64,000 bases of DNA from Sminthopsis crassicaudata. Lineage: Eukaryota. Each line of letters begins with the position of its first letter. Positions within the stretch are counted from its first letter, which is position 1. The stretch is taken from assembly GCF_048593235.1 (NCBI RefSeq), contig NC_133622.1:193533198-193597197 (forward strand). Direction: 5' to 3'. The notes beneath the pieces are model-generated. The model saw only the letters and a list, made by a program, of their open reading frames with translations. It was not told the origin of the DNA and ran no database searches. Of the stretch, positions 31,425 through 55,218 are shown piece by piece. The position numbers and the translations under genes are program-made.

Positions 31425-32016
31425 GTCCCAGAATTTGCAGGAGTACCCGGAGAGCGTGAGGAATACCCCACGCCCGCGGTGCAGAGGCAGGAGGAGGAAT
31501 ATTCGGTGCCGAAAATGGATTGAGGAATGTGCGAAGGCGTGCACTACCGGCGAAGACAGGGACCGAAACAAGGACCGGGACCAAGATGGGGACAGGGACC
31601 TGGACGACGACGACGACGGGGACGAGGACGGGGACGGGGACGCGGACGAGATTGGGGATGGGGATGGGGATGGGGACGCGGATGGAGATGGGGACGGGGA
31701 GGGGGACAGCTCCACGTGGCAGATTCAGTGCTCCAGCCAACCCAGCCAGTGCTGCACCGGCAGCAGCTACCTTTCCTCCGAAACCCGTCGGACGAGGCAC
31801 CCCGAGGCCTTCGGCTTGCACTGGCCTCATCCTCTGGAGCTGGCCCTGGACTTGTCCGCCGGCCTGGCCCTGCTGTCCTTGCTGGGAGAAGGGGGCTCAG
31901 AAATGATGCTGCCGCCCTTGTTCCTCTTTATCCTTTACCTGTTGCTCACCATGCCCTTGGCGATGGTGCTCGGCTGCAGGAAACGAAATCGAAGGCTGAC
32001 TTGGAGGGAGGGTTAA
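31425..32016 (+). CDS. Unrecognised gene, coding exon 2: basic/Cys segment, Asp-Gly acidic repeat, C-terminal hydrophobic hairpin (spliced protein 224 aa)
   Basis: Acceptor tgcccccccccccag|G at 31423-31424; 592 nt open to TAA. The hairpin LELALDLSAGLALLSLLGEGGSEMMLPPLFLFILYLLLTMPLAMVLG is followed by the basic stretch RKRNRR. AATAAA at 32269. Confidence 0.7.
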
Positions 32017-32268
32017 TCCAGAGCCTGGGTCTAGTACACGCTCAGCCCCGAACGCAGGGAGCTCTCCTCCGAAAGCAGACCAAATATTGAAGTCCATATC
32101 TGGAATACAGAGCCCCGATCGGAAGACAGATCCGATCTCCTTAATCTCTGCCTGACCTCCAACAAGAATCTTGCATTGGAAAGCAAGCACGGGAGCCCAA
32201 CACATAGCCCGAGTACAATGGATCCCAGACCCAAACAGGACTCAGACTGGAATACACCTGGTAAAAGC

Positions 32269-32274
32269 AATAAA
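32269..32274 (+). terminator. Candidate polyadenylation signal (AATAAA) of the unrecognised gene
   Basis: gcAATAAAgg about 250 nt after the stop at 32016. Confidence 0.55.
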
Positions 32275-32639
32275 GGGGCCCTGACCCAGCTGCCTCTCAG
32301 TATTTCGTCCTGCTGGATTGGGGATGGAAAAGGGGGCGGGGGAGGGGGATGTCATAGTGTTCTGTTGACTTCCAAAAACAGGCAATGGGGACTTGTGATG
32401 CTAGGTCTAACCATATGGATGAGACCAATAATTTCAAGGTTTGCAAATTACTTTTCTCAAATCAACCCTAAAGTAGGAATTATACCCAATTTACAGTTGG
32501 GGAAACTGAGATTCATATAGATTAAGCAACTTGCCCAATCTCCCCTAAATATAGTATGCTTTCCTCTAAGCTTCTCTACTATTTTAGATCTCAATTTATT
32601 TGATGAGGAACAAAATTTGAGAGACATGCTGGTGGGTTT

Positions 32640-33562
32640 TTGTTTTATTTTAATAGCATTTTATTTTTCTAAAACATGCAAAAATAGTTTTCAAAATTCA
32701 CCTTTTGCAAAACTTTGTGTTCCAAATTTTTCTCTTCTCCTTGCCCTCCAGAAGACAGCAATCAATTTGATATAGGTTAAACACGTACAATTCTTCTAGA
32801 TATATTTCTATATTCTATATATTCCATATTCATCATGAACACACAAAATCAGATCAAAATTATGAGAAAGGAAAAAAAAAGCAAACAACAAAATGGTGAA
32901 AATGTTATGCTTTGATCCACATTCAGTCTATAATTCTCTTCTCTGGATGTGGATGGCACTTTCCAACCCAAAGTCTATTTGAATTGCCTTGAAGTACCTC
33001 ATTCTTGAAAAGAACCAAGTACATCATAGTTGATCATCCCATGATCTTGTTACTGTGTACAATGTTCTCTTGGTTCTGCTCACTTCACTCAGCATCAGTT
33101 CATGTAAGTCTTTCCAGGCTTTTCTGAAACCAGCTGCCGGTCATTTATTAGCAATAATATTCTATTACATTCACATACCACAATTTACCCAACCATTCCC
33201 CAACTGATGGGCATCCACTCAGTTTCCAGTTTCTCACCACTACAAAAAGGGCTGCCACAAACATTTTTGCACATGTGGGTCCCTTTCCCTCCTGTATGAT
33301 CTCTTTAGGATATAAGCCTAGTAGTAACACTGCAGGATCAAAGGGTATGTACAGTTTGGGCATAGTTCCTAATTGCTCTCCAGAATGATTGCATCAGACT
33401 ACAACTCAACCAACAAAAGTCCCCAGTTTTCCCACATCCCCTCAAACATTTATTTTTATCTTTTCCTGTCATCTTAGTCAATCTGAGAGGTGTGAAGTGG
33501 TGCCTCAGAATTATCTTAATTTGCATTTCTCTAATCAATAGTGATTTAGAGAATTTTTTTCA
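32640..33562 (-). mobile_element. 5'-truncated L1 LINE (ORF2 C-terminus plus 3'UTR)
   Basis: ORF 33148-33363 reads YIPFDPAVLLLGLYPKEII...CAKMFVAALFVV..WKLSGCPSVGEWL.KLWY, the L1 ORF2 C-terminus. Confidence 0.9.
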
Positions 33563-53525: not shown

Positions 53526-54002
53526 NNNNNNNNNNNNNNNNNNNNNNNNNNNNNNNNNNNNNNNNNNNNNNNNNNNNNNNNNNNNNNNNNNNNNNNNNNN
53601 NNNNNNNNNNNNNNNNNNNNNNNNNNNNNNNNNNNNNNNNNNNNNNNNNNNNNNNNNNNNNNNNNNNNNNNNNNNNNNNNNNNNNNNNNNNNNNNNNNNN
53701 NNNNNNNNNNNNNNNNNNNNNNNNNNNNNNNNNNNNNNNNNNNNNNNNNNNNNNNNNNNNNNNNNNNNNNNNNNNNNNNNNNNNNNNNNNNNNNNNNNNN
53801 NNNNNNNNNNNNNNNNNNNNNNNNNNNNNNNNNNNNNNNNNNNNNNNNNNNNNNNNNNNNNNNNNNNNNNNNNNNNNNNNNNNNNNNNNNNNNNNNNNNN
53901 NNNNNNNNNNNNNNNNNNNNNNNNNNNNNNNNNNNNNNNNNNNNNNNNNNNNNNNNNNNNNNNNNNNNNNNNNNNNNNNNNNNNNNNNNNNNNNNNNNNN
54001 NN
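53526..54002. other. Assembly gap (477 N)
   Basis: Run of N ending in a tandem repeat. Confidence 0.99.
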
Positions 54003-54073
54003 CCCACGTGAGGATTATGCAAGCCCCCTCTAATGACAATTGTTCCCACGTGAGGATTATGCAAGCCCCCTCT
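54003..54073. repeat. 42-bp minisatellite (1.7 visible copies, runs into the gap)
   Basis: cccacgtgaggattatgcaagccccctct occurs at 54003 and again at 54045. Confidence 0.8.
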
Positions 54074-54729
54074 CAAAGGTCCCAGCCAGGGGTCAAATGG
54101 TGACTTCTTCTCGGTTGGCCTTGGCAATCCGCCCCTCTGCCCCGAGGGTCCGGCTCCCTGAGCCCCCTCCGCTCTTTGTGTGTCAAGAAACTAATGAAAC
54201 TGCTCCCCCTCCTACCCCTTCAAGTGGGCAAGCTCATCATTACCCGAGGATGGCATTTCATTACCGGAAAGTTCTCTCCCCTTCTCCTTTCCTAGCTTTT
54301 CCTTCCTTCCTTCTCCATCCTCTCCCAGGACTCACCATTTTGGGATAACTTCTTGTGGAACCCTGGACACTTTGGATGCTCAGGGGGTATTTTAGGATCA
54401 TTCTTTATGCCTTGGGAACAACCCCTTCCCAGCCTCTATTCCCCCTAGGCTGTAGATTTGTCCTCCTTCGAACGTAGTGACTCGGGGATCATTCAGTTCT
54501 CCCTCAGACAATTTCCCACCGAAGCTTTGGATCCTTCCGCTCCCGGTGGATGCTTTGGGATCGTTTCTCCCTCGGTACTCTGGCCTCACGATCTGCTCCC
54601 CGTAGTTTCATCAGCGTCAGGCTCTGGGATCTGCTCCCCTTAGATCCTTTCGCGACCCCCGTTTGCCCCACGGGGTGCCGGGGATCACAGTGCCTCCCCT
54701 TCCCCCTTCCCCGCAGGTGCACCGGGTCG

Positions 54730-55218
54730 ATGCAGCGGTCCAGGACTGAGGGGGCTACGGACGAAGCGGGGGCGGGAGAAGGCCTGAGAAATGAGTGGCC
54801 GAACTGGGCTCTGTGGAGAGCCTGGGAGCACTGGTGGGAGGGCCCAGGCGGAGCTCGGCGGCGCTGGGCCACCTGGTACTCCGGGACCTGCTGGTGGGTG
54901 CCCCTGCAGCGGGCCCTGTGGCTGCTTGAGTCGGGCCTGTACCTGCTGCTGTCCCTGGGCCTGTGCCATGCTCTCTTCACCACGGGGTGCCACCTGCTGC
55001 GCTCGCTCTGGCCGGTGGTGGCCGCGATGTGGAAACATCTCCTCCCCGCCCTGCTGCTTATGGCCTTGAGCGCGCTGCCGGCCCTGCTTTTTGCGGCTTC
55101 CTTCCTTCTGCTGCTCTCCACCCTCCTCAGCCTGCTGGGGCTACTGACCGGCATGTCCCGGCCCGGACCTGTCATCAGCCTCAATGCCAGCCTCGACCCT
55201 GGCCCCAGGCCCATCTAA
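54730..55218 (+). CDS. TMEM239: Transmembrane protein 239 homologue (162 aa; coding exon begins at the acceptor 54716/54717)
   Basis: MQRSR...GAGEG...[53 protein letters not shown]...LLSLLGLLT matches recalled human TMEM239 closely. Syntenic after C20orf141. Confidence 0.93.

Follow-up and report, generated by a model that had tools for sequence, protein, structure and literature searches.

The stretch of DNA analysed here, 64,000 nucleotides from the fat-tailed dunnart, Sminthopsis crassicaudata (hereafter the window), is the CPXM1 / C20orf141 / TMEM239 locus of this species. An original prediction, made from the sequence by manual alignment, had taken a hydrophobic hairpin found in three of its genes, LOC141546453, C20orf141 and TMEM239, as the possible mark of a tandemly duplicated family. 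If such a family existed, three small and so far uncharacterised membrane proteins would share their origin and a structural unit open to testing. A three-member hairpin family is not supported, because the hairpins are no more alike than shuffled or reversed hairpins.

The three genes are indeed small, adjacent and on the + strand in the dunnart, as had been stated. The features on which the following sections draw are listed here; ORF stands for open reading frame.

22615-22953 and 25501-25887, - strand: CPXM1, domain matches to Peptidase_M14 and F5/8 type C, respectively
29211, - strand: likely start codon of CPXM1 (we infer its placement; the ORF 28693-29211 opens like a signal peptide)
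30516-30621, + strand: probable 5' untranslated exon of LOC141546453 (RNA contigs of three runs begin at 30516-30520)
30885-31041, + strand: ATG exon of LOC141546453, with the ATG at 30959 and two alternative donors, after 30996 or 31041
31425-32016, + strand: last coding exon of LOC141546453, including the stop codon (ORF, RNA contigs, marsupial orthologues)
31588-31707, + strand: (GGGGAC) x 20 tandem repeat, the acidic stretch rich in aspartate and glycine (Asp/Gly) (Tandem Repeats Finder)
31831-31884, + strand: predicted hydrophobic helix 1 of LOC141546453, residues 149-166, PLELALDLSAGLALLSLL (hydropathy scan, AlphaFold2)
31909-31974, + strand: predicted membrane helix 2 of LOC141546453, residues 175-196 (hydropathy scan, AlphaFold2)
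46422-46645, + strand: C20orf141 coding exon 1, with EAGEGP at 46449-46466, hairpin 1 at 46515-46628 and the donor GG|GTAAGG (DUF5562)
46735-46951, + strand: C20orf141 coding exon 2, including the stop codon, with GGGEGP at 46790-46807 and hairpin 2 (sequence read, family profile)
48586-48611, + strand: possible coding exon further upstream in a longer TMEM239 isoform, with MTKAVLLG and, after it, the donor GTGAGT (N-terminus of Tasmanian devil model P0003)
53526-54002, no strand: assembly gap of 477 N (N-run scan)
54730-55218, + strand: TMEM239 coding sequence, 162 amino acids and stop, with GAGEGL at 54769-54786 and the first membrane helix at about 54925-54990 (PF15841)

In the dunnart the likely start codon of CPXM1 and the ATG of LOC141546453 lie head-to-head, 1.75 kb apart, and LOC141546453 adjoins CPXM1 in three marsupials. 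C20orf141, with its two coding exons, lies directly upstream of TMEM239. The same order, with both genes next to each other on one strand, is found in the six eutherian loci examined. The distances differ: from the C20orf141 stop codon to the TMEM239 ATG there are 7.8 kb in the dunnart versus about 0.7 kb in the six eutherians, and the CPXM1-to-C20orf141 interval is about 17 kb, compared with about 6-8 kb in eutherians (three loci extend as far as CPXM1).

C20orf141 and TMEM239, known neighbours in therians, belong to established, poorly characterised families. The exon-1 ORF of C20orf141 matches Pfam DUF5562 (PF17717; E = 1e-11, 45.5 bits, cut-off 29.5). The database search for this gene used exon 1 only and yielded marsupial orthologues that are 83-91% identical; the exons were joined for local alignment, and the resulting model of 146 amino acids can be aligned from end to end with P0049-P0052 and five eutherian models. 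A family hidden Markov model (HMM), built from an alignment that includes the dunnart model itself, matches exon 2 at E = 2.7e-27. TMEM239 is a full-length member of PF15841 (E = 3e-77, 258 bits, cut-off 27), with 46 orthologues found and a Tasmanian devil protein that is 98% identical. According to a published report, pig TMEM239 interacts with Rab5A and helps African swine fever virus to enter early endosomes (PMC11288436).

The marsupial gene LOC141546453

LOC141546453 is a transcribed, spliced and already annotated gene. The original prediction had described it as an unrecognised gene: real it is, with RNA joints at 30996|31425 and 31041|31425, but unrecognised it is not, as RefSeq already lists the ORF 31408-32016, at 100% identity, as 'uncharacterized protein LOC141546453 isoform X2' (P0001) of S. 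crassicaudata, and orthologue models exist for wombat, koala, bilby and opossum. A literature search found no study mentioning LOC141546453 or the LOC identifiers of its orthologues.

The expression evidence consists of contigs of public RNA runs aligned to 29800-32800; these do not fix the start of transcription. The GT..AG joint 30996|31425 occurs in three runs from three studies (X5, X8 and X9) and corresponds to the donor used by isoform X2. The joint 31041|31425, which is that of the two-exon model in the original prediction, was seen in run X8 only, as was the joint 30621|30885, an intron in the 5' untranslated region. The contigs are interrupted at the (GGGGAC) x 20 repeat and end at about 32290-32350, just beyond an AATAAA at about 32269. 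On the other side, in the interval 29800-30520, one deep RNA contig, 3593 nt long, stops at 30490; those of LOC141546453 start at 30516-30520. These ends fit divergent transcription of CPXM1 and LOC141546453 from one GC-rich region; alternatively, a 1-base indel variant at 30515 could have caused the contig break.

As in the dunnart, LOC141546453 lies head-to-head with CPXM1, about 1.8 kb away, in wombat (L001) and opossum (L008). It is therefore older than the separation of Australian from American marsupials. When 1.84 billion representative proteins were searched with HMMER, using as query a profile of the C-terminal 104 residues (the hairpin region), only three clusters were returned, all marsupial (koala, bilby and opossum), and there were no DUF5562 or TMEM239 proteins among the matches. 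Neither tblastn (E < 1) nor an HMM of the five species gave a match in the DNA between CPXM1 and C20orf141 in Grammomys, Diceros or Pteropus. One tblastn match within the window itself, at 54265-54456 (E = 0.35), holds a stop codon and was dismissed as chance. None of the five orthologues has a Pfam family; matches to TrAA12 were below the cut-off and confined to the acidic repeat stretch, and were not retained.

The predicted protein has about 209-224 amino acids and is without a signal peptide. In P0001 a variable N-terminus is followed by a conserved basic segment, RRxxRC...EC, with a helix predicted at residues 34-58, then by the Asp/Gly stretch and a serine-rich linker. After these come the hydrophobic helix 149-166, a short acidic loop, the strong membrane helix 175-196, which ends 13 residues before the C-terminus, and a basic tail. 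The first of the two C-terminal helices is short (16-19 residues), contains both Glu and Asp, and has a predicted local distance difference test (pLDDT) score of about 60-68 in the AlphaFold2 model. The second is the best-conserved part of the protein among the five marsupials. The AlphaFold2 model as a whole has a mean pLDDT of 51.5 and three helices, and is informative for helix positions only. A comparison of folds was set aside, as the model is too uncertain and helical hairpins do not discriminate between families in any case. Given a basic tail, an acidic loop and no signal peptide, the two C-terminal helices may form a hairpin anchor, with both ends, and the charged N-terminal part, predicted to be cytosolic. 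The resemblance to tail-anchored and hairpin-anchored membrane proteins is in layout only (short hydrophobic helix, terminal strong helix, basic tail).

The Asp/Gly stretch derives from the GGGGAC repeat and differs in length among the five marsupials. Between dunnart and wombat the ratio of nonsynonymous to synonymous substitution rates (dN/dS) amounts to 0.5 overall; it is higher in the C-terminal part (0.76) and in the linker (1.2). On these ratios (0.5 and 0.76) the gene evolves fast and under weak coding constraint. The transcript, though real, might contain a non-functional ORF and be a by-product of the divergent CPXM1 promoter in which a GC-rich, repeat-containing ORF has persisted by chance. 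The dN/dS values, the hexanucleotide repeat that makes up the central part and the low mean pLDDT would all agree with this. We nevertheless consider it distinctly improbable: in five marsupials, on both sides of the Australian-American split, the ORF is intact and has kept its exon structure and C-terminal helices, the profile scores 126.5 against opossum, and the 34 columns that are invariant among the five species lie mostly in the RRxxRC...EC segment and the membrane helix.

LOC141546453 most likely arose by one of two routes. It could have been born de novo from a transcript of the divergent CPXM1 promoter, or it could be an old gene that has been lost or has become unrecognisable outside marsupials. 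It resembles lineage-restricted (orphan) genes at divergent promoters in being confined to one mammalian clade, in its head-to-head position with CPXM1, the 55-61% GC content of its region, its simple repeat, its fast evolution and its C-terminal hydrophobic segment. Such traits are common in young genes. LOC141546453 is, for its part, at least as old as the common ancestor of marsupials. This leaves an expressed, marsupial-restricted gene, head-to-head with CPXM1 and annotated only as LOC141546453 and orthologues, as a useful outcome of the analysis.

Hairpin similarity compared with chance

The peptides compared in the original prediction had been placed correctly, all on the + strand (LELALD from 31834, the C20orf141 hairpin at 46515-46628 and LESGLY of TMEM239 at 54925-54990), and the identity counts could be reproduced: 15/38 with one gap for LOC141546453 and C20orf141, and 8/22 ungapped for LOC141546453 and TMEM239. 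As evidence of a family, however, the hairpins fail. For all three pairs of genes the sequence similarity is at the level of chance, no better than that of shuffled or reversed hairpins, which is the outcome that the prediction had itself named as speaking against it. Leu-rich hairpins align well by eye, and 15/38 identities are what shuffled hairpins yield.

Pairs of sequences were compared by Smith-Waterman alignment with BLOSUM62; significance was judged from 2000 shuffles, done globally, within 20-residue windows or within 10-residue windows, and each p range below covers all three. The C-terminus of LOC141546453 scored 48 against C20orf141 (p = 0.08-0.28) and 37 against TMEM239 (p = 0.19-0.54), and C20orf141 scored 41 against TMEM239 (p = 0.10-0.60; reversed, 47).

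Profiles of orthologues were then compared with hhalign, as the original prediction had proposed. They contained 43 sequences for TMEM239, 10 for C20orf141 (dunnart, four marsupial proteins and five eutherian models read from TMEM239 loci) and at first 2, later 5, for LOC141546453. Of the nulls used, a shuffle of columns within windows of 15 (window-15) holds the hydrophobic segments in place and is the relevant one for comparing hairpin with hairpin. The hairpins stayed within the shuffle null (window-15 z = -0.25 to 1.4). With the five-species profile, LOC141546453 scored 14.9-21.1 against half 1 of C20orf141 (window-15 z = 1.1-1.4; reversed profiles, 12.0-14.1) and 13.1-18.2 against half 2 (global z = 1.1-2.1, window-15 z = 0.3-0.8; reversed, 13.7-17.0). 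TMEM239 scored 12.4 against LOC141546453 (global z = 0.46, window-15 z = -0.25; reversed, 15.6). Overall, hairpin scores were 10-21 versus nulls of 10-16 +/- 2-3.5, with reversed profiles often as high. The method does have power, because orthologue controls scored 90.4 (C20orf141, marsupial versus eutherian), 283 (TMEM239) and 126.5 (LOC141546453, Australian versus opossum).

Searches with whole families gave the same picture. The family HMMs, run against six-frame translations of the window and of eight loci, gave no cross-family match at E <= 5 and met only the genes themselves, with no extra copies or pseudogenes. There were no Pfam cross-matches at E <= 1 among LOC141546453 (five orthologues), C20orf141 and TMEM239. 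LOC141546453 thus has no match to DUF5562 by Pfam, by family HMM or by hhalign above the null, and no significant similarity to the TMEM239 family.

In gapless profile scans LOC141546453 and C20orf141 were not significantly similar at windows of 15 and 23. The membrane helix of LOC141546453 scored 20.8 against helix 3 of TMEM239, compared with 19.0 for the register with C20orf141 put forward in the original prediction. The membrane parts of C20orf141 and TMEM239 gave p = 0.13-0.93 against shuffles. An alignment of C20orf141 hairpin 1 with TMEM239 helix 1 (LL[DE]S ... [RH]A.F[ST]T) was also considered and rejected: many other Leu-rich registers score as high or higher, and it does not rise above shuffles.

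The core of the best alignment in the original prediction, G-x-x-M-M-L-x-x-L-F-L, is not ancestral as judged from orthologous sequences, because its MM is missing from the other marsupial LOC141546453 proteins and from eutherian and wallaby C20orf141. In LOC141546453 the MM occurs in the dunnart only (TLL in wombat, koala and bilby, MLL in opossum), and in C20orf141 it occurs in some marsupials only.

The GAGEG(P) motif and the origin of the three genes

Among the sequence comparisons, the motif GAGEG(P) is the sole signal above chance, and it joins C20orf141 and TMEM239 only. An N-terminal AGEG common to these two proteins (EAGEGP at 46449-46466 and GAGEGL at 54769-54786) had been noted in the original prediction; it is there, and it is conserved in both families. 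G-A-G-E-G-(P/L) lies near the N-terminus of TMEM239 in 40/43 sequences. In C20orf141 there is one copy for each coding exon, 18-23 residues ahead of the hairpin opening L-[LQ]-[DE]-[SGA]-x-L: GAGEG is found in half 2 in 10/10 species and in half 1 in 7/10 (Diceros has AGKG in half 1). The motif was tested with a position-specific scoring matrix (PSSM) made from the six TMEM239 columns and scored against 5000 composition-matched shuffles. The eutherian C20orf141 sites score 22.6 and 17.2 bits, which none of the 5000 shuffles matched, and the dunnart sites score 14.4-14.6 bits, which 0.4% of shuffles reached. The six-frame background of 268,048 positions contains about 22 matches of at least 14 bits; this is about the number expected from the genes, the matches not having been tabulated singly. 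A test of the longest common substring, applied to GAGEGP, was weak (p = 0.02-0.04), as Leu runs also yield 6-mers, and was replaced by the PSSM. The motif is absent from all five LOC141546453 orthologues, in which the best PSSM score is 6.1 bits and lies inside the Asp/Gly repeat.

With hhalign, TMEM239 scores 21.5 against half 2 of C20orf141 (z = 5.0 and 2.4) and 17.9 against half 1 (z = 2.9 and 1.7). No similarity was detected beyond the motif: the TMEM239/C20orf141 alignments span only 6-9 columns (16.6-21.5, P = 0.007-0.036), and alternative alignments of the hairpins score at most 9.8. Within C20orf141, half 1 and half 2 align over 52 columns (P = 0.003, z = 3.7 and 2.6), which is suggestive of an internal duplication. 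A literature search found no paper treating C20orf141 and TMEM239 as one family, and none on the apparent two-unit layout of C20orf141, with a GAGEG motif and a hairpin in each exon.

Since the motif is conserved in both families and statistically unusual, common descent of C20orf141 and TMEM239 is plausible; we would lay even odds on it. The two genes would then stem from one ancestral unit of motif plus hairpin, which would be present twice in C20orf141, once for each coding exon, although the hairpins themselves carry no detectable signal of this.

The competing explanation is that no two of the genes are related and that GAGEG(P) is a short functional motif (for example, for sorting, cleavage or binding) that arose independently or by chance. 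It would account for several observations. C20orf141 and TMEM239 align over the 6-9 motif columns and nowhere else, their membrane parts are no more similar than expected by chance, and the family HMMs do not cross-match. The distance from motif to hairpin is about 20 residues in C20orf141 versus about 45 in TMEM239, and a shared 6-mer occurs in 2-4% of plain shuffles owing to Leu runs. On the other hand, the motif PSSM is highly specific, as its low number of background matches indicates, both families keep the motif across therians, N-terminal to the hairpin in all three units, and C20orf141 and TMEM239 are immediate neighbours on the same strand in every species examined. We regard this explanation as rather unlikely. 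Whatever its origin, GAGEG(P), present twice in C20orf141 and once in TMEM239, offers a concrete site for mutation in functional work on either protein.

Taking the locus as a whole, we put a probability of about 0.7 on LOC141546453, C20orf141 and TMEM239 being three separate small membrane-protein genes, with hairpins that resemble each other as any Leu-rich helical hairpins do. The tandem-duplication family of the original prediction keeps a plausible part, C20orf141 and TMEM239, by virtue of the motif, and loses its third member, which is without AGEG, is found in marsupials only and has the MM in the dunnart only.

Several points weigh against the reading as three separate genes and should be borne in mind. 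The profiles of LOC141546453 and C20orf141 are shallow (5 and 10 sequences, with an effective number of sequences, Neff, of about 1.8). Against global column shuffles, the hhalign comparison of LOC141546453 with half 1 of C20orf141 reaches z = 2.4-3.2, and the gapless scan of the same two genes gives p = 0.002-0.028 at a window of 30, a borderline value as one among 12 such tests. Short membrane hairpins lose detectable similarity fast, so that non-significance is no proof that they are unrelated. The motif was chosen after it had been seen, and a rough correction for every possible sequence window gives a chance probability of about 0.004, a figure that is our own estimate from the 22.6-bit score and not the output of a tool. 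The internal repeat of C20orf141 is significant by pairwise comparison in the dunnart only, and the HMMs of the two halves miss each other. Finally, there is the weak coding constraint on LOC141546453.

The original prediction might be right after all. One ancestral motif-plus-hairpin gene would have been duplicated in tandem; the copy next to CPXM1 would have gained its long N-terminal part, lost the AGEG, been kept in marsupials and been lost in eutherians, and the similarity would have decayed to the edge of detection. Adjacency, common strand and small size are as this account requires, as are the z values against global shuffles and the window-30 scan. The proposed register is in fact the best gapless match between the LOC141546453 and C20orf141 profiles (19.0 versus 10.8 for the next best), and LOC141546453 has a GEGD element ahead of its linker in dunnart, bilby and opossum. 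With hydrophobic segments preserved, however, z is only 0.3-1.4, and reversed profiles behave alike. The MM core is a derived state of the dunnart, AGEG is absent from LOC141546453, and its GEG elements sit inside the GGGGAC repeat. Neither the family HMMs nor Pfam give cross-family matches, the hairpin-region search of 1.84 billion proteins met neither DUF5562 nor TMEM239, and there is no trace of the gene in the syntenic DNA of three eutherians. The domain layouts also differ, and the 145-residue N-terminal part of LOC141546453 has no counterpart in C20orf141 or TMEM239. TMEM239 itself goes beyond a single hairpin in its number of membrane helices, and a Trp-rich insert separates its motif from its first helix. 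We judge descent of all three genes from one such ancestor to be very improbable. The same low rating applies to a fuller version, in which a single GAGEG-plus-hairpin unit would have been duplicated both inside C20orf141 and along the chromosome, with marsupials keeping a remodelled third copy that eutherians lost.

Candidate upstream TMEM239 exons, the assembly gap and other observations

The window contains three runs of N, at 10970-11172, 23659-23936 and 53526-54002. The last of these lies 6.6 kb past the C20orf141 stop codon and 728 bp ahead of the TMEM239 ATG; the peptides compared above and all three coding sequences are independent of it.

In the Tasmanian devil, a TMEM239 model (P0003) is extended at the N-terminus, and the first exon of the extension has a match in the dunnart at 48586-48611. 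Given this match, transcription of TMEM239 may start about 6 kb ahead of the main coding exon. The gap at 53526-54002 falls inside the intron implied by the devil isoform. A micro-exon of the same model, encoding DQRNAID, has no match in the readable sequence of the window and may lie within the gap. At the right edge of the gap (54003-54060) the direct repeat CCCACGTGAGGATTAT occurs twice within 45 bases, which suggests that a tandem repeat caused the gap.

Two further observations concern other parts of the window. To the left of CPXM1, at 5210-5947 on the - strand, there is an intact ORF of 245 amino acids with a GNAT acetyltransferase domain (Pfam PF00583, E = 8e-17), preceded by a hydrophobic stretch. 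The ORF text GGPEFKS.LRHLTLPSCVTLGKSLN occurs at both 8689-9060 and 51631-51894; these are most likely copies of an interspersed repeat.

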